Of a DNA stretch of 64,000 nt, positions 6,162 to 54,800 are shown piece by piece. Each line of letters begins with the position of its first letter. The stretch's first letter is position 1. The notes under the pieces are model-generated. The model worked only from the letters and a program-made list of their open reading frames with translations, was not told where the DNA came from and ran no database searches. Source of the DNA: Zootoca vivipara (taxonomy: Eukaryota); assembly GCF_963506605.1 (NCBI RefSeq), contig NC_083288.1, positions 38,068,001-38,132,000 of the forward strand, in the 5' to 3' direction. The translations under genes and the position numbers were made by a program.

Positions 6162-8003
6162 TTAGATTTGCCCCCACTTGTCTCTGGGGTTAGGATAGCA
6201 CAGGCCAGCTGCACAACATAGCATGGCACAGAGGCAGAGAAGGAAAGCACTGGTCATCAGGAGCCGCTGGCTGCAGAGGGCACGATCCGCCTGAGAGTGA
6301 AAGGAGTGCAACAATGAATGCTCCTCCCCTTATAATCCAACTTGCATCCTGAAGAAACCCAGAATCCCCAGGTCCAGATACTGTCACTGCCCACATTCAT
6401 CTTACCTGATCCAGCATGCTGGACAGGGCAGGATTAGCCTGGTAATGTGGCTGGTAACAAATTCCTGTCTCTTCTTGATGCATGTCCCATTCCTCTATCA
6501 CACATTTAGGTGGCTGTCTGGGGACAAGATGGGTGTATTGCATTAATGGGTTAAGAACTCCTTGAAACTAAATCTCTTGGCTCACCTGGTCTTGGGGAGA
6601 AGGGATGAAGGTGCAGTGATGCTAAGGCAGTTCTCATGGGAGACTGAGTTCGTGATGATAGTCAGGAAGTGGATTGATTCCTGGGCATCTGGACCTGTGG
6701 TCGGAGTTGATGGGAGGAAAGGTCAAGGGGAGATGGACACGGAACTAGAGTTCCAGAAATCTTTGGGAGGATGTTGCAATTGGTCACGAGTGAGAAATCA
6801 CTCACCTTTCAGACCCAGTTTTTCCCCAGTGACTGTCAGACCTAGGCGTGTACCATTGGGAGGATCTGTGCCGTTGTGGAGGTCAAAGGTCAAGCCAACC
6901 ATGACAGAGACTGCTGTAGGGGTCTCAGCAGTGGTTGTGGAGGGAGTTGGTGTCAAGGCACTTTCCTGCGTCTTATTTGGGATACAGAACATTAAGTGTG
7001 CCAGAGACTTTAGCAGAGAATTCCAGTCCTTAGAGATGAGGGAGGGAAAAGGAATGAGAATTGACTCTTAGTTGATTCTATTCTCTTAATTGCAATTTTT
7101 TACATTTCCTTCTGCCTTTAAAGTACCTTTCTAATTTCACCCAGTCTTGCCACTAAAAATTCCCTTTTGCTCTTAACAGCTAGAAAATTGAAAGATGGCA
7201 ACTTTATTTAAAAAGTACCATAAAACCTCTCAGAACACCTGGATATTTGAATATTTCAGATATAGCTGCACCTACTAATTTAAAATTTTGCATTGTTGAA
7301 GATCCTTTTCTTTTGCTCCCCACTTCTTCTGATAGTAACCATTTGGGACTGTCTTTTCAAGGGCAGTTTCTTATAGCGTATTTGTAAAAGCCAACAACAC
7401 CCAACCCTTCTGTAATTCCTGAATGTTTAGCTTGGGTCATTAAGGTAGGATAACAGCAGCCAACACAGGCAACACTATTTTTGAGAGCAAATCAATGCAG
7501 CTGTTCAAATTCAGGTAAATCTCTCAAGTCTATTAGAAAATGGAAATAAATAAAAACAATTGCCAAAAGATAAATCACACAAGTCTGCCTCTGCAATGAA
7601 CACCCGACATACCCAAGTCAGCCAAGAATTGTTAGGGAAATTCTTTGCATTCCATCTGAGAAGATACCCAACCATCCTGAAAGTTCAGTTGCCGAGCCTA
7701 AACAGTTAGTAAGAGACCAAGGAGAAGGTAGAGCACCCACCACTGCCTCCTAAAGTCTCTCATGCGTCCTTTACAACCACAACCCAATTCCATCCCCAGC
7801 ATTTTGGTCTGATTTTCTACTTAAGGTGATCATCTCTAGCTCACCTCTTTGACATCAGGATTCTGAACATCATGTGACTGGATGTAGGCAGCAAAACCAA
7901 CAAAGGCAACAGCCAACGAAAGGAGGCAAAAGAAGAAGGTGACCAGAGGTGGGTGTCGCTCCAGGCAGACACGCAGGGAGCCCAGCAGGGAGCAGATGAC
8001 CAT
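6162..8003 (-). CDS. TMEM219: Transmembrane protein 219 (IGFBP-3 receptor; TMEM219/TMEM248 family), 243 aa
   Basis: Coding exons 8003-7845, 7028-6806, 6694-6586, 6517-6406 and 6290-6162, all GT-AG with consistent phases (732 nt). Translation MVICSLLGSLRVCLERHPPLVTFFFCLLSLAVAF...NPDVKEDWNSLLKSL...GEKLGLKG...QPPKC...DRALCSQRLLMTSAFLLCLCAMLCC...YPNPRDKWGQI matches the TMEM219 pattern (HPPLV TM1, DW, GLKG, QPP, C-terminal TM). AATAAA at 5951-5946. Neighbours fit 16p11.2 synteny. Confidence 0.9.
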
Positions 8004-10694
8004 GGTCAACCCTAAGAATGAGGGTAAGAAGGTGTCATCCCAGCACTAGAAGAACCTGAAACTTCTGCTGGAACAGCCAGAATCAAAGGGAAACGAAAAG
8101 GCTGGCAATGTGCTACCTATTACCCTTTGCACTTTGTGTGGTATAACCATAAGCTTTACTTTATTAAATAAATTTTAAAAAGTCAAATCGTGTCCCAGAA
8201 ATGTGAATGGAAATAACACCAAAATATATTCATTCAATCTCATAATTGCTCAGTGATTATTTAAATATTTAGCGTGCATGCGGTCTGGTTGTCTAAAGGG
8301 ACTAAACTTGCTGAAAAGAAAGTGGGAATTGGTGTGCCTAAGATTGCCCCTGCCTCAAGATCGCCATGTAAATGGAAAGATGATGTACTGCAACTTCGTA
8401 TTCATTTTTTATGTGCTTTCCAAAAATACCTGAAGACATTTTGTTTCAACAAACATTTCCATTTGGATGAAAAGCTCTCCATCTTGTATTGCTTTTAAAA
8501 GTATGTTATTGTAATTCAGATTGAGACATGTGAAAGGCAATTCAAAAATTAATAAAATGAATATATTCAGACTGTGGGGTGTTTTTAGACAAGTAACCAC
8601 TTGACGAAGTTAGCAGTCACTAGATTCTTGATCATCGCAACTGGCTGGATGACTCTGCTTGTATGAAAGAACGTCACATTCAAGGAGATACAGGTAAGGT
8701 TTTCCTACTTGACAGGTTTCCCTACTTCTCTATATTTCTGATGAAGGTGGCAAATTTCAACACAATTAAGTTGGAAAGAAAGAGCTGGAATTATAGGTGA
8801 AAGTTGGATATTTGCAACCCAGAGTTGCTTCATTTGCTCCACCCAACATGGGAATCTCATCATTGCCAAGTCTTCTCGCAGTGTGATGTTATTTGTTGGG
8901 GATGAGGAAGGGGGAAAACTTTATAAGGAGCTTATTTTTTAACAATCTCTGTCAAATCTTAAAGTATAATGTGCCACGTGATGTACTGTTGTTGATCACA
9001 TTGTTTTTCCTTTGTTTAAAGTTTTTTTTTTAAAAAAAGTATATGGGGGTGCTGATCTTCGTGTGTGCCCTCAAAATTCACCAAAAGAGAGAACCCCTCA
9101 CAAAATGAATAAGCAACATAAACTGTGGGAAACGGAAGACTACATTTGATTTCTTAAGTTTTGTTCCATTCCTTTGTTACATAAGGCTTCACTCCTTTTG
9201 AGTCTTCTGGTCTTGTGAGACAGTTTCTCCCCATATTTCTTAAGAATTGCATGTGAATGTGTAGTTTCATGGTAGACTTGTTTTGTGCTGTATATCCCAC
9301 AAATGTTGGTGTGTTTACATCACACAAGCAACTTGCTAGCAGTTACTGCAGCGAACTGCTAGCAAGATCATTGTGCAGCACGTGATCTCCTGGTCCCTTC
9401 GCTGCTGGGAATGTCAGTTGCAAGGAATTGTATGTGAGGACAGGGCTGTTGTGCTCAGACCCTGCTTGTAGACTTCCAATAGGCATTTTGGCTGACCACT
9501 ATGAGAACTGGATGGGCCATTGGCCTGATCTAGCAGACCCTTCAAACATTCCTAACAAACAGTTTAGCCCTTGGCTCTGCCCACGCGATCATCATGAGCT
9601 CTTTTTAAGTCCACTAATGGCTTCCTGCCACTGCAAGATGTGGTGATGGGCACAAGCATAGATGGAATAAACACACACTTTCATGGAGAATGAACGTGTT
9701 CTGCTATTAATCATGACAAATGGAACCTGCAACAAAAAGTTGTAGTATAGAGGCCCCTATTTGGAATTCCTGCCAGCCAGCCATGCCCTTTCCCTGCATA
9801 TTCCATTTTCCCTCCTCCCGCTTGTCCATTCCTCCCTCAATTCAACAGAGAGTCAATATTCTATAGCCATTGAGTATGTTTAGTTCTTCCTGAATAACTC
9901 TTCCATGTGCACTCATCATGCACTTTTAGCTACACAAGGATCCACACTTGGGAGAATGAATTTGCTATTAGTGTAAGGGAAGGCTACATACAACCTCCAA
10001 ACTTAAGAGGTAGCATGCCTGCTAATACTGTCACTAGGGAGTAATAACAGGTGACAGCTATTGCTTCTATGCCTGTTTATGAGCTTCCCAGAAGCATAGA
10101 GTTTACCACTGTGGGAAAGGGGATACTAAACTAGATGGACCTTTGGCCTGGTTCAGCAAAGCTGTTGTTATGATCTCCAACACTGAAAGTTCTGCTAATG
10201 CCATTTTGCCTGGTTATCCTCACAACCAACTTCTCCAACACCCTCCTAAGTGTCCCAACGTAACTGCTAAATACAGAACAATCGACTTACACACTTTCAA
10301 AAGTAGAGTGCTGGACAACTGAGGGACACTTGGTACTTTTTGATTTCCCACATCCCACTATGATCCACATAGCAGCCACCATGTCCTCAAAGAGCTAAGA
10401 CAATCTGTATGTTGCATCCTTCCCCCCACCCCACTGTTTCATATCCATCCCCCATCATCTTTCTTCTAAATTGCAGATTAAATAAAGAGGCAATGGTTTG
10501 AGGAGAGTTTAAGGCTGCCTAGAAGCCCTGGTCTTAGATATGTATTCCTTGATTGAGTGTTTGTGGTGGTGCTGGGGGGGAGGGATAGTTGTGGTTTTTC
10601 TGGATTGCTTCCTACATTACACAACACACCACACAGGCAAGTCCTCTGTAAGAAACAACACAGTAAGCACATAAAGATTATCATATGTGGCAAG

Positions 10695-22930: not shown

Positions 22931-24707
22931 GGGCAAAGAGTACTTATTTATAGATAATTAATATATTGTATCGTCAAAAACAGTTTTAGCTACATTTAGG
23001 TCAACTTATGAAATATTCACCTTTTAAAGGAGGCAAACCAACAAAGAGCGCATTTTCTCCTCCCCCTCCCCCAGTGCAGGTCAGGAACAGTAAGTTATAT
23101 GGCTCATTTTTTGTTACGAGTCTACTTGTGTTTTTTAAGCCCAGAAAAGAGTAACTGCAAACCAACCCAGGCTCAGATTATATTAAAGGAGGCTCAGATT
23201 CAAATAAGCAAGCAATTCAGACCATGCAATGTTTACTTGGACCTATCCCATTGATTTTAATACTATTTCGGTGGGGGCGGGGGCGGAGATCGGGCTCATA
23301 GCTTTCTGTATATTTCTACGAAGTAGCTGGGCTAAGAAAATGTTTTGCCCCTATGAAGGCGATCAACATTGCACTCTTACCCAACAGGACACAGATGGCT
23401 CCTTCCTTTGGCTTTCGTGATAAATTGTGGTGGGGATTTATTTCACACACTTCCTCATTACCACTGCAACTAAGCATCTTTACTGAGAAGCCCCATTGTG
23501 CTCTGTAGGCTTTAAAAAGGTAAAGAACCCCTGACAGTTCAGTTCAGTCACGAACGACTCTGGAGTTGCAGTGCTCATCTCGCTTTACAGGCTGTATGCT
23601 TTACTCACTGTATGCTTTAATCTTCAGTAGATGTGCTTATGACATACCCCTTACCCAAAGACGCAGTCTCAGGAATCTGCTGCTGTTGTGGTAACTGATT
23701 GGCCGCATCAGTTCATTAGTTTTTAAGATGGCAATCTTGTTTTTAAAAGGGGGGGGGGCGGCTTTTTTACAGTGACAACCAGCTTAGAAGCTCAGCAAAT
23801 GAGAATAAAAATAAGAGTATCAAACCATTAATTACCATTTAGGTAAACCAGCACTGTACCTCTAAAAGATGTCTAGAAGTAAAGTTATGCTTAGCATAAT
23901 CTCATCACTATGCTGGCACTGAGCAAGTATTTTATTTCTATTAAATCAAGTTGATCAAGTCACATAATTTCAGTAGAAATCACCGCTGCCTTCTTTAAGA
24001 CATCTTCTGAAAACTGTTTAAACACGCCTTCACATTTTTTTTCTTTGTGACCAACCAGTATTTATTGATGTTTTTAATTATGCCTTTAGTGGTTTTATCT
24101 TGTATGTTGCATACCACCTTGTCAATACTTACAAGAATGCAGCTTATAAATTCTTCAGTGGATAAACAAATAAAACTCTATTAGCCATTTATTAATAGTT
24201 CTTTGTGGTAAACCTCCCAAAGCTTTGTGCTTTCAAAAATTCATTCATGTTTTCCATCGCTACCCCTTAAAAATAATTTCCCTCCCAAACCATTTTCAGT
24301 GCCTTGAGCCACATCACTACCTACCCCATGCTGGTAACACACCTGTGTAGCGATGAATAATGAGACACTGACAAGGCGAGAGAAGTGAATTTAAATAAAT
24401 TCTTTTTTTGCCTTTATTTTCAGGGGAATCCAGAGAAATTAAAAACCATGTGAAGAAATTAAAAACCAGAGCATTAAATCAGAGAGAAAGAGAGAGAGCA
24501 AGAGAGAAAAAGAGAGGTGAGGCGTTAGCCCCACCGAGACAATTTGAGCTATAACAGCAAAGGGAGGGAGGTAGGCAGGTGGCAGAGCTTCCCCTTTCAA
24601 GATGCTTGGGCTTCTCCAGTCTTCAAGGGGGGTGGGGTGGGCATCTTGCCTCTCCCCATGTGCCCCCCCTCATGTCTTAGCGGTGCTTCCCCTGGGAATT
24701 ATTGAAG

Positions 24708-26575
24708 TTAACCCTTCCCATCGAAGGTGTCTGTGTAGACCGTCACTCTGCTAGGATCTAGATGGAAAAAGAAAAAGTGATGGCAACAGGAACAATGCCT
24801 TGAAGGGAGATGTGCCATAAATAATGTGTATACATATACATACATACATACATACATACATACATACATACATACATACATACATACACCTCTGCCCGAA
24901 GCCTCAATGGTTGGCCACAGAACAGGCCCTTCATTAATCTGCTCCCACATATGCAGCTCTTTTGTGGTTTGGTTGAATTGTTTAAGGCAGCCCCCCACAT
25001 CCAACATCCGATAGTTGTTTATTTCACCAGCTCTACTTCTCTTTCCCATCTCCCATCACACAACTTCATAAGGCCCAGTTTATTCACCTCCCCGTACTGC
25101 ACAGAACCAATCACCCCAGTTTTTCAGATAGCATCAACCTGCTCCTGCCTGCTACTACATGAATAGAAAACCTGCCTGGCTCATGGGTCAAGGCTGGCAG
25201 TGGCACTTGTCTTCAGTGTCACTGTCTCGAGTTCTCCAGGCAATGATGTGGGGTCAGAAGCATTTTCAAAGTGTAATTTGAAACTTGTGTTAGATCAGGC
25301 ATCCCTGACCACTGGTCCTCTTAGCTAGGGATCATGGGAGTTGTAGGCCAAAACATCTGGAGGGCCGCAGTTTGGGGATGCCTGAGTTAGGGCTTCAAAG
25401 CTATGGAGCACATGCACTCGACACAACATTAAAAAGCAAACCACGAAAAGACACAGTATTAAAATCAGTGCCCCTCAGCTTCTGAAAGCAATCCTTACAA
25501 AAGGCTGGTTTTTTCCCCAAAATACGAGTGGTCAGATTAAATTTGTGTGTGGGGGGGTGTTTGTTTTTTTTGCATGTGTGATACAGTAGAGGGAGATGCA
25601 ACTGAATATATGGCAAGGGTTTGAAAGTATGAATTACACACCCACAATTCTTAGCCACATCCCCTCCACTTCACATTGTTGTACATTACTGCAAATCTTA
25701 ATACCCCCTTTAACATGAAGCTGTTGAGCCCCAAAGGTCATATTTATGAAGCCACTGATTTAGGCCCAGACACCTCCATTTGCTTACCTTGACTGTGTAG
25801 CTCCCATATATGTCTCCACTCTGTATTAGAAGGGGGGGAAAGGGAAAAGGGAAATTAGAAGAAGCCAAGCACTGTTTGTAAATAAGCCCCAGTGCCCCAA
25901 GACCCTCCAACACAGCTGAAGCTGCTCACTTCTCAAGACAATGCCCTGAAAGTTCAGCCACACTGAGAAAAGTTGGTGTCTCAGTGCACTGAAGGTCACA
26001 TGCCCATCCAAACTTTTGCCCAAGCTACATAAAACTGGATGTGGGAATCTGTGCTATCTGAAGCAATGCTTAAATTATGAGGGAGCTAAATGGTATCTTT
26101 AACTACCTCTTTAGCCCAACCAGGGCCTCTCTTAGCCTTCTAAAAACAATAGCTAACAAAGTAATCAGAAAAGGTGGGGATAGGCTGTTTGATCATCATC
26201 TACCCAAAGAAATTGTTGCCCTAGTCTGTGGAGGAAATGTAAACTGTAGTAGAATTCAACCTCAGAGGAGTGAAAAGATTGTTCTTTATACTATCCAATA
26301 CCTCTCCACTTTCATGAACTGCAAACGTTCTTTGTGCTGTGTGACTGCCCATCCACTCACCATCTCCACAAACATCCCTAGCTTTCCAAATGAAGCATTT
26401 CCTTGTGTCCTCCATCCCTTCTCCCATCAGATGTCAAAGAGATAAATAACTACCTGACATTTAGAAGACATCTGAAGGCAGCCCTGTTCAGGGAAGTTTT
26501 TAATGTGTGACATTTTAATATATTTTAAATTTCTGTAGGAAGCCGCCCAAATTTCTGTTGGGAGGGGTATAAATA

Positions 26576-26623
<48 letters not shown>

Positions 26624-29600
26624 CATTATCATCATCTCTTGACTATGTTCAACTACCCATGGGACAGCTCCCAAGCCTCAACACACATGCATTGGTTCTC
26701 CTCCCTTTCCCTCACGCCCAGTGACGCAGTGGGATCCTTCCAGCACCTTACCATCCAGGTGGTAATTTTTTGCAGCCTGCCAGTCGCTAACTTCCATTTT
26801 CTCCCAGGATGCTCCAGCATCTGCATCTCGTTCATCCACGTCTGGTGCCGTCCCGCCACCCCCTCCATGCCCAGCCCCCGGCTCATTGATAAAGGAGAGG
26901 CCCCACTCATTCTGAAAGATGGCTCCCAGGTGCTGTCGCCGACTGCTGTCAGATGGCGGGGGGCTACTTGGGGGTGGCGCCAAGACACAGTTGGGGAGGC
27001 TATTGGTGGTGCGGACGGCTGAGGCAGGAACATGGCAGGCTTTCCCCGGTTGATCCAGGTTCTCTTTCAGCTTGCTGGCATAAGAGATCTTGGGGATGAT
27101 CCGGGCACTGCTGCTATCAACCGGGAAAGCGGGAAGTGGCCGGAAGAGCGACCATGTTTCCTTCCCAGAATCCTCGGTGGCTGTGTTGGCGGCATTAGAT
27201 GTGGCGGCAGGCTTCTCACTGGCTTTGATGGTACTGCCTCGTTCGGATTCGGGAGATGACGACGGGGAGGGTGGGTCGGAATAGCCGCGGCGCCGGTGCT
27301 GCCACCGCCCGTTGGAGATGCTCTCAGGAGCACAGTGATGGCCGTTTGTGCTAGGTCCCCATTCCTTGCGGTCTGAGGGGCTGCCTCGGTAGGTCTTGCG
27401 GTATGCTGTAGCATGGAAGGGGCGGGCATGGTAAAAGCGATGAGGGTAGCGGTGGGGATGGTGGGCAACAGGAGGGTCCCGCTCAGACAACTGGAGATTG
27501 CGGATGTTGAGGCTGTTGGAAGGGCTCAGGGGAACACTGGGTTCGTCAGCTATCTCAGAGGGAGCAGTATACCCATTGGACTCCCATGCACCTGAAGAGA
27601 AAGAAGAGAAAGGGTGAAGACCATGTCTGACTCACGTCCCTTTGTCACCCTCTCACACCAAGAATGCAAGCACCTCAGACCAGCAACCCCATTTTTTATT
27701 TGGGAGGGTGGGAAGCTTATGTTACCAAAGATTGCTTGAAACAAAATAAAAAAATTCCTTCAGTAGCACCTTAAAGACCAACTAAGTTTTTATTTTGGTA
27801 TGAGCTTTTGTGTGCATGCACACTTAAGGAATTTTTTTATTTTGTTTCGACTCAGACCAACACGGCTACCTACCTGTAACTAGAAAGATTGCTTGGTTAG
27901 TGTTTGGAGATTTGGTAAGAAAGTTGGGGGATTAAAAGGTGCTTAAATAGGACACCTAAATATTTGAACATATTTCTGGCTTTCGTTTATCTGGAATGCA
28001 GACACATTCACCTCTCTCAGTTTGGGGTCAACAGGTCACAGATGAGGCAGAAGATGCCCATGGGGTTAAAATATCCTTGAGGTTTATCTGGGGTGCGCAG
28101 GTGGCTAAAATCTTCACATCAATTAAGTGATTTCAAAACCTCTCTCCATGCTGCTAACTCAGTCAATTCCAAAACAGTGATCTTCAGTCAATAAAAGAGG
28201 GGGGGAATTCCTCTTCTGTCTTCTGATATTTATTAATTATAAACTCTAAGACAATTACAAGGAACCTTTTGCCCCCCCAGAAGCTGCTGAACCACATTTT
28301 GCATCTTGATGGCCATACTGACAGGGGCTGATGGAAGCTGTAGTTCAGCAACATTAGGAAATCATATGAAAATACCACTTCTGAGGTTGGTGTAGCCCAC
28401 TCCCCGCTTTTCTGGTTATTTAGCATTCAAAACATTCTGTCTTCAGGTTTCCAAGCTTCTTTACATTGTGATGAGCAAAGGGGGGGAACAGAACCAGAGG
28501 TGTTAATGCTGAAGAACTCAAACCTATGAGATCCCTTCTCTTAAACCCTAACCAATTTCAGGTTCCTCAAACCCTTTCCCAATAATTCTAGAATCCCTTC
28601 CCTTAAGCCACTGAGCTACCCAGAGAATTAAAGAGTCATTGTTTTCCCATCTGTAGGGCTTCATTCCTCTCCTAAATATACCCCAGGAGTGTGAAAGGGA
28701 TATGAAGAACATGCTACTTTTTCCAAATGGGTATCTAGTAAAGCAGCACGGTGGCAGATAATCACTTCTTCTCCACAACTTTTTAACAGGGAAGAGAAAA
28801 CGGGGAGTATAGAGGATGGGCATTCAGGGCTCTAGGTTCTCAGGATGAATGTGCCTCACCCAGCACTGAGGTGCAACCACCTCTGGAACAGAAAAACATG
28901 CAGAAAAAGCATGATAGAAAGGAAAAGGGCAAAGCCCAACCTCAGTTCAGTACAACACACCTTCTCTGGAGACCTGGCTTGGCCTGTAGCCCAGCTCTGC
29001 TCCACCCCCTGCGTGACAGAAAGAATGTTTTATTTTCAACATTTAGATGCATTAAGGATAGCTAGAACTTAGATGCATGTTACAAAAGGCAGTTAATCAA
29101 ACCAGAGCCACTGAATTAACCAAATAGGACCCGCCCTAGTAAGGAAAAGGAAACTGAAACTCTGGAAAGGGAGTGTGATTCAGTAAATTGAGATTTACCA
29201 GGTAAGGGGCAGGTTTGCATGATTCTGTGGAGATACAGCAGCTTATGGTTTACGGTAGGATTTTCCAGCATGGGTTGTCCGATTCTTTTTGGGGGGGAGC
29301 AGGAAACTTAGCTTGGGGGGTGGGGGTTCACAGCTCCACATATGAGGTAGACACTATAGGGCTGAGGTAAAGGAAATTGAAATAAGGATGCGCTCTAGTG
29401 GTGAAAAAAGCTTGCTTGTCCCAAGAGTTCAGTTTAGTTTTGGACTAAATGAACAACAGATGCATACAAGGAGTTTGGGGTGTGTGAATGGATTGATAAG
29501 GGCAAGGATCAGCTGAGTTCATTGGGAACTAAAGGAAACATTTCAAAATGCTAAGCACCAACACCAAAATTCTGGGTGATCAAGAAGCTGGGTTTTTAGT

Positions 29601-29916
29601 AGCCAGTCTTGAGTAGGTGATGGTGAAGGGTTGGGGAACTTGTGGCTCTCTAGATGTGGCTGGGCTACAACTTCCATCATCCCTGACCAATGGTCATGCT
29701 GACTTAGTGCTTTTGGGAGTTGCAGTCTAACATCTTCTGGAGGACCAGAGGTGACTTTGTAGAAGTGACTTAGAAGATAAAATACTGGCTGCAGTTTAAG
29801 TTACCTGTCCGGATGCGGTTGCTGAGGTTGTGGCATTTTTCCTTCTTTCCACCGAGGAGACGCAGCTCCTCCTCTGGGTTGCGATTTTCATCCATTCCCA
29901 GCTCCTCCTTCTGCAT
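24708..29916 (-). CDS. NUFIP2-like paralog (FMRP-interacting / stress-granule protein family), 344 aa
   Basis: Coding exons 29916-29805, 27591-26752, 25820-25788 (33-nt microexon) and 24757-24708, all phase-1 GT-AG junctions (1035 nt). Contains the NUFIP2 signature blocks TWSLFRPLPAFPVDSSSARIIPKISYASKLKENL, LGAIFQNEWGLSFINEP and DWQAAKNYHLDEWRHIWELHSQDPSRVTVY. AATAAA at 24418-24413. Confidence 0.88.
24838..24887. repeat. (TACA)n microsatellite
   Basis: Tandem TACA units. Confidence 0.95.
25296..25384. mobile_element. Internally deleted copy of the palindromic hAT MITE
   Basis: CAGGCATCCC...GGGGATGCCTG ends with most of the left arm missing. Confidence 0.7.
26445..26635 (+). mobile_element. 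L2-like LINE 3' tail ending in a (TAT)n microsatellite
   Basis: Similar to 49960-50140 and 39780-39890 and to the reverse copy at 49010-49350 (GGCAGCCCTGTTCAGGGAAGTTTTTAATG...GGGGTATAAAT(ATT)n). Confidence 0.6.
27741..27880. mobile_element. Short dispersed repeat (Penelope-like fragment)
   Basis: AAAAAATTCCTTCAGTAGCACCTTAAAGACCAACTAAG is shared with 54425-54512 (inverted) and 58810-58930. The family assignment is from recall. Confidence 0.5.
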
Positions 29917-30349
29917 GGCCTCTTGACTGTGTGTGATGCAGATCCCAACAGCAATAGAGCTTCGAGGATGTGGAAGGTATTCCTAAACCCCAGAGTCCTG
30001 ACTACAGTCTTGCTCTCAGCCTCCTTTTCAAGCACAACACCACAGCGTGCCCAGTGACTCTACTCTTCCTCTATTTCGCTGCACTGCAAATTAGTAGCCT
30101 GTTCCTGAAAGCTATTCACTCTCTCGCAGCGGCAAAAGTCACCTCAATGGCAGAGAAAGCTGCCAGGTACCCTGCAGAGCCCCCCAACTTCTGAAATGCT
30201 ACAGCAGCTTAAAGGACCAAAGGAAGCTTCTTCTGTTTGCACCTACACCTACGCTGTATACAAACACCTGTATAAAACTTCGGGAGGAAGTTGCCCCCTC
30301 GTTTTCCGTTTTAGCTGTCTGTATGCCCTACGGTACCCCACCCACCCCA

Positions 30350-34920: not shown

Positions 34921-37900
34921 TCAGTCTTTGAAAACAGCTTGGTGGCCGTGAGGACGTTCATCATGCATGATGTGCCTACGGACATGTATGCGCCGGACAC
35001 GGTGCTCCCGCCCATCTTCGTCGTCACCTGCACGGAGGGGGCCTCCACCCCCACCTGCCACCCCACCTGTTGCCTCCAGGAGGGCCTTGTCTGGCACTCG
35101 TGGCGTCTCGTAGATCAGGATGTTCAGGGTTTCCTCAAAGATCCGTGCCTCTGGGAACTCCACCTGTGTACATGGGGGCAGCAAGGCAAGAGCATACTGA
35201 GCAACACCAGTTCTGTCCAGAGTGTGGTGCAAGTGTTTGGTTTCAATATGGAATCCTGGGTTCAAATCCTTGCTTGGTGAATTTGAGCTTTACAGTTTTT
35301 TTTCAGTTTAACAACTCACATAGTGCAAGAGTAAAACTCAACAGCTGCTCTGAACTCCTTGATGCATAAAAATGTAAGCAGAGCTGCTGTTTCGCTAGAT
35401 GGGAAGAAATGGAACTGGGAAAGTTGACCTGAAGTAGCACTTTATCCAGAGAGTCATTTGAGTGGCCTAGGGGAAAACCTCTTCTTCCCCTCAGGTTCTG
35501 TTCTCCCATGTATGGGACCACTCCCTCCCCCAAATGCCACCAGAGGGCTACCTAAGGACCACCATGCCCTGAAGGAAGGAGAGGTCTCGCTTTCAAAAAG
35601 CTTTCTTCCCTGTGGCTCTCTCTTTATTGCTTTATAATATAGTTTTAATTTACCGTATTTTTCCCTGCATAAGATGCCCCCTAATTTTGGGTACTCCAAA
35701 TTAAGAAAACACCCCCCAGCACTACCTGTGTATAAGACGAGCCCCATTTCTAAACAGATTTTTTTGGGGGGGAACCCTAGTCTTATATATGGTAAAATAT
35801 GGTATATTGGTTTTTTCAAAGAAAATATGTGATGTTTGCCCAAAAAGCAGTACACACAGGTTCTGCTATCCACACGCTCACTATGCAAAAATTCACTTAT
35901 CAGCACATAAAGGACATTCACTTATCCAAACAGCCAACTTCCTTACTTCCTTGTTTGTTTCTGCCTTGCTGGTTGGCAGTAGCCATTTTCGGGCAGACAC
36001 CACGGAGAGAGGGAGGGAAGGAGCAAGATCAGACAAACTGGAGAGCAGGTACAATTTATCCAGAAGGGGAAAGCTCATATCTGAAGCTCAGGGGTCTGCA
36101 CATTACCTTGGTCTGCTTCTTCTCAGTGGCATATACAATGGAGGTGCAGCAGACTTCGGCAATCTTGCGGCCCTGCCCATAAAACGACCAGCAGCAGATT
36201 TCATCCCCAAGAACATCTTTGATGAAGAGTACTCGGCCATTGAACCGCAGAGCCAGCTTGTCAAACAGTTCGATATTCTTCAGCAAGTTGTCATCGGAGT
36301 TACTGGAAGGGAGGGAAAGAGAGAAATGGTGGCGTGATCTCTCTTGAGACACCTCTATTAGCCAGGAGGTGGGAGTCAAGAATGGGCGACATGGGAGTCA
36401 AGAAACAATACCAAGCTATGCCCAATTCCAGCAGTTGGGTGTGTGTGTTGCATCTTACCTTGTATATGAATACTTGTTATTACTTCGGTTGTGCAGCAAT
36501 TTCACCACAGGCTAAGAAAGGAGGAAAAGAAGGATAAATATGGTGGAAACTGTCTTTTTAACCTGCATAAGAGAAACGGTCACCTGTGCCATTGGCCAAG
36601 CGACAGTGATTTCATGAAATGTTCATATATGTTCTAACATCTGGTATGTGTGTGTTCACATCAGACCCATTTTATGCTGTGTCAACAATGTGGAAGGTGC
36701 TAAAATATTTCCATGTGATCAACTCTGTCACATGGCAAGTCTTCATGACTTGAATGGGTCACGAGACTGGAGTTCCAACTTATGTCTTTTAGTAGGCAGT
36801 GCTTGATTTTAGCTAGAAGGCTAAGAAGCTTTGCAATTTAGGACTTCACTAATGGTGGCAGACGCCATCTGCACTCATGAGTATCACCTCACTGGCCCTA
36901 AACAAGCAAGAAGACATCTAAGTCAAGCAGTCTAAAATGGCGCAGATCTACATGATCTTGGACTTGATTGAGCCTTATGTGACTTCACAGCCTCTTTACC
37001 TTGGAACAGCTTGAGATGATCTGCTGCTCCTCCTTGGAAGAGGTCACCATGGGGATATGGCAGAGGGGGTCATAGGCCTCACTCTTTTGCTAGGCAGAAA
37101 AAGATACATACAAATATATTACAACTTTATTAGAAGCCCTAAAACATGCCACATATTATTAACATTCCACACTTATGTACTGCCTTTTACCAGTGCACTC
37201 ATGGGAGTTTATAAATTAAAACAAATGACATACAGTTTATTTAACACATGTAACAAGGGTGGAAGGATGGGGAGGAAGAAGAAAAATATGCAAATTGGGG
37301 AATCAGTTTTTAGATAATGTTGCATGATGGTTACAACCACCAGATGGAACAATCACTGCGGGAGACAGTTCTGAGAGGGAGAGGCCAAGTAGCAGGTCGT
37401 CCAAATCAGGCTAAAGAAAGTGGGCCTTGCTAACTCACCTCTTTGTCTCCCCAGTTCCTTCAAACTGCTTGAGGCTCAGAGGAGTCTGCCTGCCTCCTAA
37501 CTGCTCAGCAGGTGACCAGCTCACCTGCAGGGCAAGCTGACAGTCCTCAACCAAGCCTTGGATCAAGTAGTACCGGGCCTCGGATAGCACTTCCTCCAGC
37601 TCCCGCTGGGATTCAGGGAGGGACACAGAGCCATCGCGCAAGTAGTTCAGAATAGTTCCAAAATGGCGCCCACTTCGGTCAATCAAGATCCAACCTGGAA
37701 AGGAAGAACAGAATTTTAGTCTCTGAACAAAAGGTATTGGGGAGGCAGAAGCAGAGACCAGGAAAGAAGAATCTCTTGCACATAAAATTAAAAGTAGCTC
37801 TGTTCTGGAGAACACTTTAAAACATTTAGAGGGAAATCCAAATGTTGCTGTCTTTGTAAATAATTTTCCTAACAAAGCTACAATATTTTGTTTTATTTTC

Positions 37901-39319
37901 TATTTCATTTGTATACCGTTATATACCCGCCAGTCTCAGGACGGTTCACAGGATAAAATCATGATATAGAAACACAGAATACATAATCAAAATTAAAGCA
38001 GTAACAACCCAATAACCCCACCAACACCCTTTAAAAGGGCACTGAATGTCAGTCAACCAAAGGCATGGTTAAAAAGCAACGTTTCTGCCTGGCACCTAAA
38101 GGCGTATAACGAAGGCGACTGGCGAACCTCTCTGGGGAGAGCATTTCACAAATGGGGAGCCACTGCAGGAAAAGGCCTGCTCTTGTGTTGCCACTCTGCA
38201 GACCTCTCATGGAGGAGGCACACGAAGAAGGGCCTCAGAGGATGATCTCAGGGTCTGGGTAGGTTCATATGGAAGGAGGTGGTTCTTGAGGTATTTAGGA
38301 TAGGTCCTTGAGGAAATTTAGGATATTTTATCTCACAAACAAAATGTAACAGATCCTTGATACCAAGTTATTCAACATTGACTAGAAAGCTTTTAAAAAT
38401 ATGAACCTGAATTTCCCCCCTGGGGTTCACTGTTCATCCTATCAGAAGCAGGTGTGAGGTAGTTCTGACATTTTCTTTGCTTCTGAAAAGAAGCCATATA
38501 GAATGGCAGATTTCTGTTACCTCCAAAGTGCCACACTTATTGATAACTACAGTGGTACCTCTACTTACGAATTTAATGCGTTCCGAACACACATTTGTAA
38601 GTTGAAAAAAAAAGTAAGTCGAATCCCATAGGAATGCATTGGGAGAAAAAATTCGTAAGTCAAAGCAACCCTATCTAAAAATTCGTAAGTAGAAAAAATC
38701 CTATCTAAACCGCATCCAAGATGGCGAACGGAGCTCCATTTGTAAGTAGAAAAATTTGTAAGTAGAGTTATTTGTAAGTAGAGGTACCACTGTAGTTGCT
38801 ATTACATAATTTATATTCTTGACTGAATTTTCATGCTATTTTTTAATATCACTTGGATTGATCTATTACATGCACTGCACTTTTCCTCTATATTTCTTTT
38901 GTAATATGCAGTAGTGCTGTTCATGGCTTTGGGGGCTTTTGGTCCAAAAAGTATTAGTGTTTATTTATCTTACTATACCATATAATCTCAGTTGAGCAGG
39001 AAACCTGGATTGGGAGAAGGGTTGGGAGACAAGACTGTATGATGCCTGGACACTTACCTTCACTATCTGTGAGCACCTCCATCCTGCCACTGAACATAGC
39101 CTTGAGCATGGTGTCTTGCTTGGTGAGGGTTTGCACTGTGGTGTAATGCAGTGACCCTCCCACGTTCAGCTTGACATACTTGCTGCTGGGGTTAAGGGGT
39201 TTGAGATCAAAGGTCACACCGGCTACCCCTCCGCTGCCATCCCGTCGCTGCTGGATTGGGACTAGCGGGGCACAATTCTCCAGGGGTGGGACCTGGTCTG
39301 CCGTGGCCTCAGCTGACAT
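34921..39319 (-). CDS. KCTD13: BTB/POZ CUL3 adaptor for RhoA degradation (BACURD1), 337 aa
   Basis: Coding exons 39319-39058, 37694-37525, 37089-37000, 36511-36459, 36302-36107 and 35163-34921, with consistent phases (1014 nt). [50 protein letters not shown], and the KCTD13-type C-terminus [24 protein letters not shown]. Confidence 0.96.
35653..35802. mobile_element. Tc1/pogo-type MITE
   Basis: TA-flanked imperfect TIRs CCGTATTTT...AAAATATGG. Confidence 0.6.
38550..38792. mobile_element. Tc1/mariner (Tigger-like) MITE
   Basis: TIRs CAGTGGTACCTCTACTTAC / GTAAGTAGAGGTACCACTG with TA TSD. Confidence 0.85.
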
Positions 39320-40307
39320 AACCACCTGCAGAAACAGAAATTGAGCAGGGAGGCCTTCCCAAACCACGTTACCTGCAAAGGGGCTTGGATTAGATGGAGT
39401 AGGGCAGAGCTTTCCAAACTGTGTGTCGCGACTCGTTAGTGTGTCAGCTGCAGTGTGTAGGCATGTCGCACAAATGCTCCCCTGCACTCCTCTTGGGGCT
39501 GGAATGGGTTGGTTTAACCTCCAATTTGCTAGTAAAACTGAATTACTGTATCATGAAATTATACATGTCCAAAAAGTGTGCCACCAACTTGAAAAGTTTG
39601 GAAAGCTCTGGAGCAGGGCCTGGGGAGCCTTTTGTCTCAACCCCCCCACCCCTTGCACACACTTCTAACTTTCATAGCAGAGCAGAGCCTCCATCAATCA
39701 GATACTCACCAGATGTTTTGGACTACAACTTACATCACGGGCATCCACTCCTTGGACTAATGGGACTAGCCTAGTTTACGTTTACTATGCTTTTATATAT
39801 GCTGCAAGCTACCCAGAGTGGCTGGGGAAACCCAGCCAGATGAGCAGGGTTTAAATAATAAAATTATTATTATTATTATTATCATTATTAGTGCAACAAC
39901 CCTGTAAGGCAGACCAGTATTGTTATCCCCGCACTACTGGTTGCAAGGTATGTGCAGGGACTCATAGAACTTAGAACCATAGAGTTGGGAAAGGGTCACA
40001 AGGGTCATCTAGTCCAACCCCCTGCATTGCAGAAATCTAACTGTTCCCTATGAAAAATGTCACTGCAGGCCACTGACTCACATCAATGGCCCCATTGGCT
40101 GGGGCTAATGGGAGTGCTAGCCCAGAACATATGGAGGGTGCCAGGTTTGCGAAGGGTGCTCTGCATAATACTGTAAAACATTTAGGACAGTTTCAGACCC
40201 ACCTGTCTTACTGCTGTTTGACACATACCTCTCCCCACACCACCACCACACACAATCTTCCCATCCCACTGTTGCCCGTTTCTTGTCAACTCTCTGGGAA
40301 GAAACTA

Positions 40308-48413: not shown

Positions 48414-51400
48414 TTAAATACACACCTTCAGAAAAGAAGCTACTTGTTTGGCAGAGATGCCGTCGACTTTCCCAAGGTCCTCCACCTGAGAAAAGGAGGA
48501 AGGAGAAATGTGTAGGTAACACAAAGCTGCAAAATCATGGAGATACTTAATTATTAAATTTGTGTACCACCCCTCATCCATAGATCTCAGGTCCACAACA
48601 ACAACAAAAATATTCTGAGGGAATAGCAATACTGCAGTAGTAGAGCATTTTGCTTTGCTCAGCACCTGGCATTTCTAGTCTCTCTCAACAATTGGCCACA
48701 GTAGCCAAATGAAACCTCCACATTCAAAGGTAATATTTATTTTTTATTTCATAAAATTTATACACCACTTGATTTTTTAAAAAAATTACAACCTCAAAGT
48801 GGTTTACAAAAAGATAAAACAAGAAAAAGGAGAAATATTCACAACCCTACTGTAAAGCATACAAAAGTTAAAATACTAAAACAGATTAACATTACCTCAA
48901 CTTCCTAAGTATCTGGGTAGGCTTGCCTGAACAAGAATGTTTTAGCAAGCGCCAAAGAATACAGTGAAGGCACTTCTTGATCTCAAAAGGCAGGGAGTTC
49001 CAAAGTGCAGATAATAATAATAATAATAATTTATTATTTATACCCCGCCCATCTGGCTGGGTTTCCCCAGCCACTCTGGGCGGCTTCCAACAGAAAAATA
49101 AAACACAGTAATCTTTTAAACATTAAAAGCCTCCCTGAACAGGGCTGCCTTCAGATGCCTTCTAAAAGTCTGGTAGTTGTTTTCCTCTTTGACATCTGTT
49201 GGGAGGGCGTTCCACAGGGCAGGCGCCACCACCGAGAAGGCCCTCTGCCTAGTTCCCTGCAACTTGGCTTCTCACAACGAGGGAACCGCCAGAAGGCCCT
49301 CGGTGCTGGACCTCAGTGTCCTGGCAGAATGATGGGAGGTGGAGACACTCCTTCAGGTATACTGGACATTAAACAATCGGGTTCTTACAAATGCAGAACG
49401 GGTATTATGTGGCAGCTTGCCAATTCTGCCAATTGAACCGGTTGAGTGGAAATATGTGGGGCAAGACGATCTTGTAGGTAAACTGGTCCCAAGTTGTAAA
49501 GGGCCTTTATATACTAATAGTAAAGGTAAAGGGTCCCCTGACCATTAGGTCCAGTTGCGGATGACTCTGGGGATGTGGCGCTCATCTTGCTTTACTGGCT
49601 GAGGTGGCCAGCATGACAAAGCTGCTTCTGGCGAACCAGAGCAGCGCACAGAAACACTGTTTACCTTCTCTTTATCTACTTGCACTTTGACGTGCTTTCG
49701 GACTGCTAGGTTGGCAGGAGCTGGGACCGAGCAACAGGAGCTCACCCTGTCGTAGGGATTCGAACCGCTGACCTTCTGATCAGCAAGCTCTAGGCTCTGT
49801 GGTTTAACCCACAGCCCGGTAGGAAATTGGCAACCAGTGCAGATCTCCAAGCACAGGTTTTATCCACTGACAAGGCATCACACTGCAGCATTCTGCATTC
49901 TGCAGAGGGCCTTCTCGATAGTGGCGCCCGCCCTGTAGAACGCCCTCCCATCAGATGTCAAGGAAATAAACAACTACCTGACTTTTACAGAACATATGAA
50001 GGCAGCCCTGTTTAGGGAAGTTTTTAATGTTTTATGTCTTATCATGTTTTTAATATTCCATTGTGAACCGCCCAGAGTGGCTGGGGAAACCCAGCCAGAT
50101 GGGCGGGGTACAAATAATAATAAATTGTTGTTGTTGTTGTTAGCCTCCCAATTCTAACTGCCGGGGTGGGGGGTATTGCTTCCGTGCCATGCTGGTGGGC
50201 TTCCCAGAAGCTTCTGGCTTGCTACAAAAACGTTGGACTAGATGGACCTTTATTCTGACCCAGCTCTTACGAGAATAGGGAGCTACTCCCTTCCCCTCCC
50301 AGATTTAAGAATGAGCAGGAGTCCTCCAAGACTTAATGCTCTGAACTTGAGCAAGGTCTGAACGTGTTAAAGCCTTGCATGGCCTACCTCCTACCTGAAG
50401 ATGAATTTCCTCTGCACAGTAGCTGCACCTGCACACACCTCAAACGATGGAAGAGCAGCTCTGTCCTCAGAGCCCACTTACCTTTTCAAAGGACCCATGC
50501 TCTCCTCTCCAGGCCATAATGCGATGAGCCTTCTTCTTGCCAATCTGGTGCAGGGCCATGAGATCCTTCACAGAGCCTGTGTTCAGGACAGCCAGGATGT
50601 TCTCCTTGGTGCGGGCCATCAGATCAGGCCGAACCACCATCTCCCACTTAGAGGGAACCTTGTTTTCAGAGCCAGGGGCCGAATCCTGGATATAGCATGC
50701 ATCATAAAAAGAAGTGGTGTGGTGTCGCACCCGTCTGTTTCCTGACTGGCCCTCATCTCATATTCTTTCACTGAATCACAAACATACCCTGGCTTCTCAG
50801 ATCTTATAAATCTCCTGCCTTTTACTTATCAGGGGTTCGTCAATGAGATACCAGGCATGCAGAATAAAGTTCTCCAGAAGATAAGACAGACAACTGTCAC
50901 TGCTGAGTTTACCTTCTCTTGTTTCACAGGCCTGTGTCAGGGTTTTTGGAATCTGCTGAGAGCCATGTCCCTGAAGCAGGCCCACTGGAAACTGCCGGAG
51001 CCACCTTATTAATAGTATTTATAACTCTGCCTTACAGCTGAACGCACTCTCAGAGAGGCTTACAAAAAACACTTCTCTCAGGCTGATGGTCTAGACCAGA
51101 GGTCGGCAACCTAAGGCCCATGGGCCGGTTCTGGCCCATCGGCCTCCCGGAACCAGCCCATGGCCAGTTCTGTGGATTGGCGTGGGGATTCCAAGGTGGA
51201 ACCTCCTCCCTCCTTGTGCAGCAAATTGCCAGCCAATCGCCTGCTAAGGTTTGAGGCCCTGGCCAATGGGCGAGCGGTGGCTGCGCATGGTTGAGAGGAG
51301 GAAGGGGGCTGGGCTTAGCTGGCCAAGCACATTTCCAGCAGCCCCTCGTCGGAGCAAGCTGTTTGCCGCCGCCACTGCCTTTGCCATCACTCTGCCAAGT

Positions 51401-51828
51401 GCAGCTCCTGTGCCTGCCCTTGCGAGTGGTAGAGGCTATCGGTGCTGGCGGAGGAGGAACGAGCAGCTCGAAAGCAGCCCTTTCGGGCTGCTCTTTCCTC
51501 CTCTGTTGCTGCTGCCACCAGCCTCTGCCTCTCGGCAGCACCCTAGGTAGGCAGGGGGCGGGGGGGGAGAGAAGCCCCCTCTGCCGTGTGCGCATGCGTG
51601 CACACACACAAACGCACTCTGGCCCACCGGGAGGTTTGTGGTGTGGTGAACTGGCCCACCCCCCAAAGAAGCTTGCCGACCCCTGGTCTAGACCATCCTC
51701 CAGGATCCTCTGTAACGTGTCCTGCTGCATGCTTGGCAACATGGAAAGTCTGAAAAGCACCAATACAGCCCATGCCCCAAGTTCAGTCTCCAGTGAGGCA
51801 GCTGGACAGGGTGAGCTCTGGCCTAACA

Positions 51829-51880
<52 letters not shown>

Positions 51881-54800
51881 CTGCTCTGAGGCAGTGAGTC
51901 CAGAACTTTGATCTGGCTTCCTCAAGACACTTGCAAAGCTACTTTCTTTCTGTTCCTGGAATGAACCATTTCAGGCTGCTTCCCACCAACCTTACCCATA
52001 AGAATTTAAATTTGCTTAAAACAGGGAAAAGGGGGGGGGAAGCATGTGGTCAGCAGGAACAGCCCTGATTTTTCTGATCTGGCTAATGCTACCTGTTCCA
52101 CTCCCAGATTTGATCCAGAAACACGGTGCGTGGGTGAGGGCGGATGTGAATTCTTCTGGGTAAGGCTTGATATTTGCCCCACAGCTAAGAATAAGGCTGT
52201 CTGAACATGAACCAACAACAGGCAATAGGTAAGGGAATCTGTTCTTTGTTCTAGGGCAGAAGATCTACAGGAGGAAGCCTGCTCTGGCAGAATCCATATA
52301 TAACTTTATTAAACCATGTTTGTAAACTGCCTCAAAAACCTAAGGGGTATATACACCTGTTAAGCAACTCTGCTTCCCACCATCACCAGCCCCAAGTTCA
52401 ACAAAGCCCCCACCCCACCCCCTTACGCACCTTCTTCTTTCGACCTCCCTTCTTTTGCTTTACAATGATGATGCTATCTTCGTTCGCAGAGTTCTCCGGG
52501 TGCTGCACTGGAGAGGTAAAGAAGGAGAGCTGTGATCTCATAGGAGGGAGGAGCATGAGAAGGGAGTCCTGCTTTCAGACCCAGCACCCTTTTACCTTGC
52601 TTGAAGGGCAATACCACTGGTCCTTGGTGTTTGAAAGGCACCCATGGCCCATGTCCATGCTTTTTGTCCTGCAGAACCTTGGTTTCCATTTCCAGCTGCT
52701 GCTTCTTAAGCCTCTGTAGGGAGAGGAAGAACAGAATGAGCACAAATTCAGATGGAGGGAACGGGGTATGCGTTCGGTGGCCTCCAGGAATGCGTGGGGC
52801 TGCCATCAGGTTCCCAGCCCAAAAAGAATCTTATTGTATAAGTTGCCAGGGGCATAATGAAGCTGGTTCTCAGTGCAAGATGGACACAGTTCAATTTATA
52901 TTAGAATCTCCTCCTACAGGACGTACTTAGTGCTACATCTCTTTCTTCCTTCAAAGCCGGCCTTTACATTGGAGCCATTGGCTTAACCAGAGTTGCCCTG
53001 GCAGGGCCTCCTGAGTTTAAAACAACAGCAGCAGCAACAAATAGCCCTCCTAGAAAAAAGCTAAGAAGCAAAATGTGTAGGTAACATTCTAAAAAGCTTC
53101 TGTGACTTGAACCAGCTTGGCTGTTCTCGCCCATCATTGTTTGTAGCCAATGAGTGAAGTTGAAGCTGTGATTGATAAGTGAGTTGTTTGGACACCAGGC
53201 AAAAGGAATCTCTGGAGTCCTGAAGAGCTGCTGTTCCCTCACTTTCCCTTTAATTGCACTTTTCCTGCCCCTTTAACTGCTCTATTTACCGCCTGCCACT
53301 CACTTCAGAAGCTTTTTTTTTTATAAAAATAAAAAAGTGTGTTGCTGTAAGGGAAGAAACATATTAACCACACATAGAAATTTAAAAATTTGATCAACAA
53401 ATGAAACACCGCAGACCTCACAATAAACAAGGCATTGCGTTTGTTTACGGGAGTTAGCCCATTGCAGTCTTTGACAGATCACGATGGGACATAGAGAAAG
53501 AGCAAACCCTTCACCTCCAGCTCACGCCGAGTCTCATCCAGCAGCCTCCGCAATTCCAGCCGCTCCCTGCGTGGGGTGTTGAGGAGGGGCAACGCACAAC
53601 TCTTTGCCCCTGCCTGCTGTGTTTCCAAGGCCTCCAAGTGCAGCAGCTTTTCAGCCAAGGCCGGCTCAAGATTCTCCATTGGCAGGAGGGAACTGGTGGG
53701 GAAAGAGACCAGAAAGTAGGGCCTACCTTTTCTAACAAGCCAGAGAGAGCTGCTCAATGCTTTAAGGGGGGGGAGTGACCATCCTCATGAAGTGGCAGGA
53801 AAGAATTTGACCGCACCACAGAAGCACTGCTTGCCTCTTCACCAAAACCTATAAAATGTTTGGTGTCTCACCTGAATGGCTTCTCTTCAACCAAGCTGGG
53901 CTGTTCCTCCTCTGGACAAGGTCTCTTGGCTTCAGGGCCTGCATCACTAGAAGCTGGGCATGGTCTTTTCGATGCTGCTGTGTGGGGAGGATGTTTTTAA
54001 TTTATTTGATGTGTTTATTGGACCTTGGAGCCTGCTCCACCTGGACTGCCCTCCTTCACCACCACTGGGCCTCCTACCACCAACTGGGCTCCAGAAAGGA
54101 TCCTGTTTTGTTTGGATATTCTTCGCTGTAATTTTCCTACAAAGTTACTAGTAAAATGCCTTGGAATAATTTGTATTCCCAATGGTGGGATATCAACAAA
54201 GAACAAATCGTGAAAATTATCCTGGCCTTATCAGAAACATTTCGAGTCACCTTACAAATCACCAGCTTGCAAACTACGTATCAGAATAACTTAATTGATA
54301 TTAAAATATTTTTTTTAAAAAAATACCCTAGGGGGGGAAAAGCCACAATCACAAAATATAACTAAAAACACAACGAAGTTTTTTAGTTCTTAGTTTTTAG
54401 TTCTTAGTTTAGTTTTTAGTCCTATCTGACGAAGTGTGCATGCACACGAAAGCTCATACCAAAATAAAAACTTAGTTGGTCTTTAAGGTGCTACTGAAGG
54501 AATTTTTTTATTTAAAAACACAACGTAAGTGTAAACATATCCACCCTATGGGCAACCAAGGGCACCAAGGGCAAAAATGCTTTTACTTGATACCTAAAAC
54601 ATGGACCTAAACCAGGCATCCCCAAACTTCGGCCCTCCAGATGTTTCAGACTACAATTCCCATCTTCCCCGACCACTGGTCCTGTTAGCTAGGGATCATG
54701 GGAGTTGTAGGCCAAAACATCTGGAGGGCCACAGTTTGGGGGTGCCTGACCTAAACCCTTGACACCACTCACATAATCTCAGTAGGCACAGGAATCCAAA

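Follow-up and report, generated by a model that had tools for sequence, protein, structure and literature searches.

A compact, expressed NUFIP2 paralog in the lizard Zootoca vivipara that probably arose before the jawed-vertebrate ancestor

We analysed a 64,000-nucleotide (nt) stretch of the Zootoca vivipara genome (assembly GCF_963506605.1, contig NC_083288.1, positions 38,068,001 to 38,132,000; hereafter the window) and found that it contains a compact member of the NUFIP2 family. The 344-amino-acid (aa) coding gene, read from the window sequence, has four exons and occupies 24708-29916 on the minus strand. We consider it likely that this gene is a functional protein-coding paralog of NUFIP2, called NUFIP2L here for convenience, that was duplicated before the jawed-vertebrate ancestor, most probably by whole-genome duplication, and that works as a granule adaptor. 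Published work regards NUFIP2 as a single-copy protein that partners FMRP, Roquin, G3BP1, ATXN2L and DDX6. Our literature searches found no account of a second family member.

Structure of the compact gene

The coding exons total 1035 nt, which corresponds to 344 aa plus the stop codon. All introns (n = 3) are GT..AG introns with polypyrimidine tracts, and every one is in phase 1. An in-frame stop precedes the ATG of exon 1. The features of the gene, in the order of transcription, are as follows.

29805..29916, minus strand: exon 1 coding sequence, 37 codons plus 1 nt; ATG at 29916-29914, donor GT at 29804
28961..29008, minus strand: alternative cassette exon, 48 nt, phase 1, encoding GGAELGYRPSQVSREG; acceptor cag, donor gtgtgt
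26752..27591, minus strand: exon 2, the main coding exon (840 nt), with the Pfam NUFIP2 match, blocks 1 and 2 and the beginning of the C-terminal block
27056..27154, minus strand: block 1, WSLFRPLPAFPVDSSSARIIPKISYASKLKENL, residues 184-216; 15 invariant columns in 16 compact proteins
26870..26929, minus strand: block 2, LGAIFQNEWGLSFINEPGAG, residues 259-278, nearly all invariant; F271 is the TTT at 26893-26891
25788..25820, minus strand: microexon, 33 nt, encoding EWRHIWELHSQ including split codons; flanked by acag on the acceptor side and gtaagc on the donor side
24708..24757, minus strand: last coding exon, encoding DPSRVTVYTDTFDGKG and the stop (TAA at 24710-24708); end of the C-terminal block
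Residues 306-344, minus strand: C-terminal block, running from the tail of exon 2 through the microexon and the last exon

For analyses of the whole protein we took the database entry P0001 (344 aa), and the window exons were translated singly. In this exon-by-exon comparison exon 1, the microexon and exon 4 were identical to P0001, and exon 2 differed at 2 of 279 residues (I121V and T138N).

The first-pass annotation of this DNA had proposed the four-exon model, and both its splice sites and the RNA junctions described below bore it out; it had missed the conserved 48-nt cassette exon. In other squamates the cassette distinguishes a 360-aa isoform X1 from the 344-aa isoform X2. The X1 insert of Rhineura and Sceloporus had an exact protein-level match at 29042-28959 (tblastn against the window).

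Two simple repeats lie in the introns: a (TATG/CATA)n microsatellite in the last intron (24824-24894) and an (ATT)n run just past the exon 2 donor (26566-26640). Both were left out of read mapping. Rfam and a repeat finder gave no match inside the locus.

The compact protein carries the NUFIP2 blocks in order

Exon 2 matched the Pfam family NUFIP2 (PF15293) with 95.4 bits (cutoff 27; E = 5.1e-27). We compared an alignment of 16 compact-type proteins (A1) with one of 17 canonical NUFIP2 proteins (A2). The profile-profile comparison (hhalign) gave a probability of 100 and E = 4.8e-55 over 308 columns. At the level of single proteins, the compact and canonical NUFIP2 of Podarcis matched in the same order by BLASTP: blocks 1-2 reached E = 8e-21, the C-terminal block E = 2e-6. 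The three NUFIP2 signature blocks noticed at first reading are thus real, and the estimate of about half the NUFIP2 length is right (344 versus about 690 aa).

The family motifs are all present in order with invariant cores. The first two are W.LFKPPP.FPVD.SSA...PKISYASKVKENL and LG.IFQN.WGLSFINEP, and the third, in the C-terminal region, is D...A..YH..E......L..QDP.R...Y. The last exon, DPSRVTVYTDTFDGKG, pairs with DPKRIITYDEAMD of canonical NUFIP2 (BLASTP). Within it P330, V333 and Y336 are nearly invariant, and the DGKG terminus is common to the tetrapod members. Exon 1 carries a clade-specific N-terminal motif, M..DENRNPEE, in which M1 and D9 are invariant and E10, N11 and P14 nearly so.

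The two types therefore share, collinearly, block 1, a VPxSAxxT stretch, block 2 with its G3BP-contact Phe and the C-terminal helix block, but they differ in much else. The compact protein has neither the His/Gln-rich head nor most of the linkers of canonical NUFIP2, and it lacks the invariant DNDGSGSESGYTTPKKRK and three other canonical motifs (named among them LFIYPSNMQ and FPKAYELDKRTSP). At 344 aa it also falls outside the canonical length of about 640-720 aa. Conversely, DENRNP and PLSPSNSLNIRNL are conserved N-terminal motifs peculiar to it. By these sequence characters the compact protein is a member of the NUFIP2 family but not NUFIP2 proper, and in the trees described below it lies outside the canonical clade.

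Errors in canonical gene models were informative about exon structure. One canonical model (P0059) drops exactly 11 residues after YHTK, homologous to the microexon, and four others (P0058, P0070, P0079 and P0085) read through after YHTK+G. These faults indicate that the canonical and compact genes share their phase-1 exon boundaries and the 33-nt microexon; on the canonical side this is read from protein models. Such a common exon structure speaks for DNA-level copying of a gene that already had its exons, and against retroposition.

Compact and canonical NUFIP2 form two probably old clades

To be a paralog, the compact gene must coexist with a canonical NUFIP2. We found canonical NUFIP2 proteins of 687-691 aa in Podarcis muralis (687 aa), P. 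raffonei and P. lilfordi, on contigs of ~45 Mb, whereas the compact gene lies on a separate 59.6-Mb contig. Both genes were also present in Tiliqua, Rhineura, Candoia, Naja, Salvator, Carettochelys, Pelusios, Xenopus, Pleurodeles and Latimeria.

We built two unrooted trees: a quick tree of 50 proteins and a careful tree of 42 proteins (LG+C20+F+G4, with Shimodaira-Hasegawa-like approximate likelihood ratio test (SH-aLRT) and ultrafast bootstrap support). Canonical and compact proteins fell into two separate clades in the phylogeny that the first-pass annotation had proposed (SH-aLRT 100 in the quick tree; 100/99 in the careful tree). In the careful tree the canonical side held a chimaera, sharks, bichir, sturgeon, teleosts, coelacanth and all tetrapod classes. 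The compact side held five sharks, paddlefish, coelacanth, lungfish, amphibians, turtles and squamates. Support for the bony-vertebrate compact group was 88/78, and the finer branching order within the compact clade was weak.

These data dispose of the reading that the compact gene is the lizard's sole NUFIP2, a shortened and translocated ortholog. The canonical Podarcis proteins sit on a different contig and group with other squamate NUFIP2 in the tree, and many other species hold both genes. No support for that reading remains and we give it practically no chance; the locus is a paralog, as first supposed, and not a relocated ortholog.

If the root is assumed to lie between the two sets, each half agrees with the species tree and a single duplication before the jawed-vertebrate ancestor suffices. 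With the root so placed, the duplication predates the split of sharks and bony vertebrates, since both groups stand on both sides of the tree. Among the 45 matches of an exhaustive representative protein search there was no invertebrate homolog. One hagfish protein (P0080), included in the quick tree, was partial and on a long branch.

The gene is transcribed, spliced and constrained

We mapped four public runs onto 24400-30100, two as Logan contigs (X1 and X2) and two as raw RNA-Seq reads (X21 and X22). All three predicted junctions were seen in RNA data, including both that flank the microexon EWRHIWELHSQ, which the first-pass annotation had predicted from the letters. The exon 1-exon 2 junction (joint 27589 to 29803; moving the cut by +2 gives 27591/29805) was present in all four runs, at contig depths of 249 and 118 and in 17 and 9 raw reads. 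The exon 2-microexon joint (25821 to 26754) had contig depths of 262 and 118 and raw reads in X22 only (3, against 0 in X21); the one letter in between corresponds to the junction 25820/26752 plus a synonymous GAT>GAC change at 26753. The joint between microexon and last exon (24757 to 25788) had contig depths of 245 and 170, with 1 raw read in X21 and 3 in X22. Exon 2 was covered in all four runs.

A single contig of 1425 nt spanned the coding exons from the microexon up to exon 1 and continued without a break beyond 30100; the 5' untranslated region is therefore long. In the two libraries recorded as RNA, first mates over the exons lay almost solely on the plus strand; under the usual stranded protocol this indicates transcription from the minus strand. 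The cassette exon at 28961..29008 had a depth near 0 in the four runs mapped, and was thus used rarely, if at all, in these runs.

Three intron stretches (25164-25545, 26310-26500 and 27647-28028) showed huge depth on both strands, up to ~100,000 in the contig runs, and many joints between opposite strands occurred near 25300-25334 and 27738-27849. We take the high-depth stretches to be high-copy interspersed repeats that are transcribed genome-wide, outside the gene.

The seven exon 2 variants found in reads were all synonymous (7/7). Among squamates, the compact protein of Podarcis was 93.6% identical to that of Rhineura, 89.5% to that of Tiliqua and 87.4% to that of Candoia (P0001, P0003, P0225 and P0007). 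The same pairs of canonical NUFIP2 gave 77.4%, 71.8% and 63.2% (P0215, P0142, P0154 and P0172). In deeper comparisons (turtle, frog and coelacanth) the compact protein was somewhat less conserved than the canonical one, reversing the squamate pattern. As a separate observation, squamate canonical NUFIP2 is unusually divergent (63-77%, against 87-94% for the compact type in the same pairs). Core motif residues of the compact protein are invariant from shark to lizard. These results show that the compact gene is under purifying selection across the shark-to-squamate range.

The same results bear on whether the locus could be a decaying or non-coding copy, a pseudogene or retrocopy whose frame is open by chance or by an artefact of annotation. 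Such a copy might be suspected from a protein that is predicted to be almost wholly disordered, and from several nonsensical database names of orthologs that were driven by low-complexity sequence. It would not be expected to keep three introns at the ancestral positions of the family, to yield spliced transcripts, to vary only at synonymous sites in exon 2, or to retain 87-94% identity among squamates and motif columns that are in part invariant from shark to lizard. On the RNA junctions, the synonymous variants and the cross-squamate identity we reject this explanation, whose probability we regard as very small.

Predicted structure and a proposed role in RNA granules

An AlphaFold2 model built with the 16-sequence alignment had a mean predicted local distance difference test (pLDDT) score of 49.6. 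It was confident only for a helix at residues 305-328 (pLDDT 85-93), the middle of which is encoded by the 33-nt microexon. A short helix (296-301) precedes the main helix, and block 2 contains two short strands (262-264 and 270-272). The protein is thus predicted to be disordered except for its C-terminal helix. No solved structure came up when the PDB was searched with the sequence of mustelid NUFIP2 or the profile of the compact clade.

Blocks 1 and 2 correspond to parts of NUFIP2 with reported partners. Block 1 aligns to residues 336-370 of a 697-aa mustelid NUFIP2. In human NUFIP2 the fragment 255-411 is essential for Roquin binding (PMC5775257), and the counterpart of block 1 falls inside it. 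Block 2 has an almost identical counterpart in NUFIP2, LGDIFQNQWGLSFINEP. The Phe of its GLSF is F271 in the lizard and residue 511 in both 695-aa mammalian orthologs, so that F271 corresponds to F511. A preprint reports that F511 of human NUFIP2 is critical for binding to the NTF2-like domain of G3BP1 (bioRxiv 10.1101/2025.11.30.691455).

Because it keeps the Phe motif with reported G3BP1 binding, the compact protein is probably an RNA-granule adaptor, by analogy with NUFIP2. We propose that WGLSF(271)INEP would dock on the NTF2-like domain of G3BP1/2 and thereby recruit the compact protein to stress granules or to similar RNA-protein granules. Block 1 may touch Roquin-type partners, and the C-terminal helix may bind another partner shared with NUFIP2. 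With no His/Gln-rich low-complexity head and few long linkers, the protein would be a stripped-down adaptor that may compete with NUFIP2 for partners. Its mode of binding would probably resemble that of other ligands of the G3BP NTF2-like domain (USP10, Caprin1, UBAP2L and the FGDF motif of alphavirus nsP3), whose Phe-centred motifs are likewise short and lie in disordered chains. The compact protein is not homologous to these ligands, and its WGLSFINEP, which is identical to the NUFIP2 motif that holds F511, differs from FGDF.

A stronger form of competition can also be imagined. With the docking motifs for G3BP, for Roquin-type partners and for the partner of the C-terminal helix kept and the condensation-driving low-complexity regions gone, the compact protein might be a natural antagonist of NUFIP2 that caps binding sites and limits the assembly of stress granules or Roquin granules. 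We regard this as a speculative and rather unlikely variant of the adaptor role. If it were true, the apparent loss of the gene in mammals, birds and crocodilians would have altered the regulation of RNA granules in those groups.

Distribution and annotation of the compact gene

A word-index search matched the lizard gene at 99% identity to the Podarcis muralis 'uncharacterized protein LOC114581571 isoform X2', and it returned compact orthologs in squamates, turtles, frogs and caecilians. An exhaustive search with cluster look-ups added salamander, lungfish ('NUFIP2-like'), coelacanth, paddlefish, cod and basking shark; the cod ortholog bears the zebrafish gene name si:ch211-214j24.10. A profile search added an axolotl protein and five shark species, one of them bearing the zebrafish name. 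In all, the compact type was found in six shark species, and the canonical type in sharks and a chimaera. The gene had been described at first as retained in reptiles and missing in mammals. Its retention in squamates and turtles is confirmed, but the distribution is far wider and includes sharks, ray-finned fish, coelacanth, lungfish and amphibians. No mammalian compact member was found in three large protein searches, which covered predicted-protein collections and not genomes, and the same searches found none in birds or crocodilians.

The label 'NUFIP2-like' is not specific to the compact gene. The one mammalian match so named, a very divergent wombat protein (Vombatus ursinus, P0086, 535 aa), was considered as a possible mammalian survivor and rejected, since in the quick tree it was nested within mammalian canonical NUFIP2 on a branch of 2.09. 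It is a lineage-specific offshoot of the canonical gene and may be a duplicate or a retrocopy.

Automatic entries for the compact gene are otherwise scattered under several names. Besides LOC114581571, they include 'FMR1-interacting protein NUFIP2-like' (frogs, salamanders, lungfish and Anolis sagrei), XB5854344.S of Xenopus laevis, and 'si:ch211-214j24.10' on cod and shark proteins. These entries fall in the compact clade and have the same motifs, with no function attached. Literature searches for 'NUFIP2-like', 'NUFIP2L' and the zebrafish-named gene found nothing. The gene is thus automatically annotated in dozens of genomes, and is uncharacterised rather than undiscovered.

Some database records of orthologs are faulty. 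Misnomers include formin-like protein 7, translation initiation factor IF-2, GPI-anchored protein 58 and splicing factor proline- and glutamine-rich-like; P0049, P0237, P0047 and P0048 are among the records where they occur. In other models, P0098 (4254 aa, from Latimeria) and P0076 (2087 aa) among them, the compact gene is run together with a long protein from upstream.

Neighbouring genes

We identified three other genes in the window.

6801..8045, minus strand: TMEM219-family gene, the downstream neighbour, with two coding exons (open reading frames 7839-8045 and 6801-7067; Pfam PF14940)
36059..39550, minus strand: BACURD (KCTD13/TNFAIP1/KCTD10-family) gene, the upstream neighbour, from open reading frames, BTB_2 and PDB matches
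50470..57744, minus strand: KIF22, with motor exons (PDB 6nje) and a C-terminal helix-hairpin-helix exon (HHH_3, 50470-50757)

The two exons of the TMEM219-family gene matched PF14940 with E = 6.6e-13 (profile positions 1-44) and E = 1.8e-9 (42-130). KIF22 was clear, at 283 bits to 6nje versus 114 bits to the next kinesin. The BACURD exons scored 104.8 and 81.3 bits against KCTD13 (4uij) and 99.1 and 76.9 bits against KCTD10 (5fta), which is not decisive; we call this neighbour KCTD13 by position only.

The compact gene thus sits between a TMEM219-family gene and a BACURD-family gene with KIF22 nearby, and all four lie on the minus strand within 55 kb. In human, KIF22, KCTD13 and TMEM219 are located at 16p11.2. 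There KIF22 is much farther from KCTD13, and KCTD13 and TMEM219 lie on opposite strands. This difference from the same-strand cluster of the lizard indicates that the block was rearranged between lizard and human. Relative to canonical NUFIP2, the compact gene occupies a different chromosomal block (16p11.2-type versus 17q11.2).

Origin of the duplication

The timing of the duplication and the map position together make an ohnolog, that is, a product of the vertebrate whole-genome duplications, the best reading of the compact gene. We infer, in part, that the duplication took place before the last common ancestor of jawed vertebrates and most likely in those events. The first-pass annotation had likewise proposed a sister gene from whole-genome duplication, and the age of the duplication and the TMEM219, KCTD13-type and KIF22 neighbours agree with it; the whole-genome event itself is deduced from timing and position rather than proven.

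The main competitor is an old paralog made by local or segmental duplication, or by duplication and a later move, before the radiation of jawed vertebrates, so that its 16p11.2-type position would be a coincidence. The timing would fit any duplication that predates the shark/bony-vertebrate split. We nevertheless hold this origin to be fairly improbable. The human regions 17q11.2 and 16p11.2 are linked by the paralog pairs TAOK1/TAOK2, TNFAIP1/KCTD13 and SEZ6/SEZ6L2, which speaks against coincidence. So does the finding that NUFIP2, TAOK1 and SEZ6 lie together, with GIT1, in one human 17q11.2 deletion interval (PMC4886423). The identical exon structure of both copies excludes retroposition, though not a DNA-level local copy. 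Our literature searches found nothing that joins the KCTD and TAOK families with whole-genome duplication, and the literature on 16p11.2, 17q11.2 and ohnologs dealt, by title, only with human copy-number variants and gene dosage.

Several points weigh against an adaptor-coding ohnolog. With respect to its origin, one gene pair cannot separate a whole-genome from a local duplication. We know of no 17q11.2 counterpart of TMEM219 or KIF22 beside NUFIP2, which favours a local duplication. The BACURD neighbour is not securely KCTD13, which scores slightly more bits, since KCTD10 is more identical over the shared stretch; this too leaves room for a local copy. With respect to its age, the tree is unrooted, so the compact proteins form a clade only under a root placed on the branch that leads to the canonical ones. 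The compact proteins of sharks, moreover, sit on a long branch (1.63) and have an unusual composition. The absence from birds, crocodilians and mammals was read from predicted-protein collections rather than from genome searches. With respect to function, the G3BP and Roquin contacts are carried over from the human protein; a single preprint is the source for F511, and Roquin binding was mapped to a 157-residue fragment and not to block 1 itself.

Significance

The value of the finding is that of a useful annotation and a comparative lead. It does not describe a new kind of system, and the proposed mechanism is borrowed from NUFIP2. For the history of the 16p11.2 block it adds one more lost gene, between the positions of TMEM219 and KCTD13. 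In zebrafish and Xenopus the compact paralog is a gene to be reckoned with, as it may buffer the loss of nufip2. For the NUFIP2 family as a whole, a half-length member older than the split of sharks and bony vertebrates amounts to a natural deletion series. The parts that it retains (block 1, the G3BP-contact motif and the microexon-bearing C-terminal helix) are likely the functional core of the family, and the parts dropped relative to NUFIP2 are likely modulatory.

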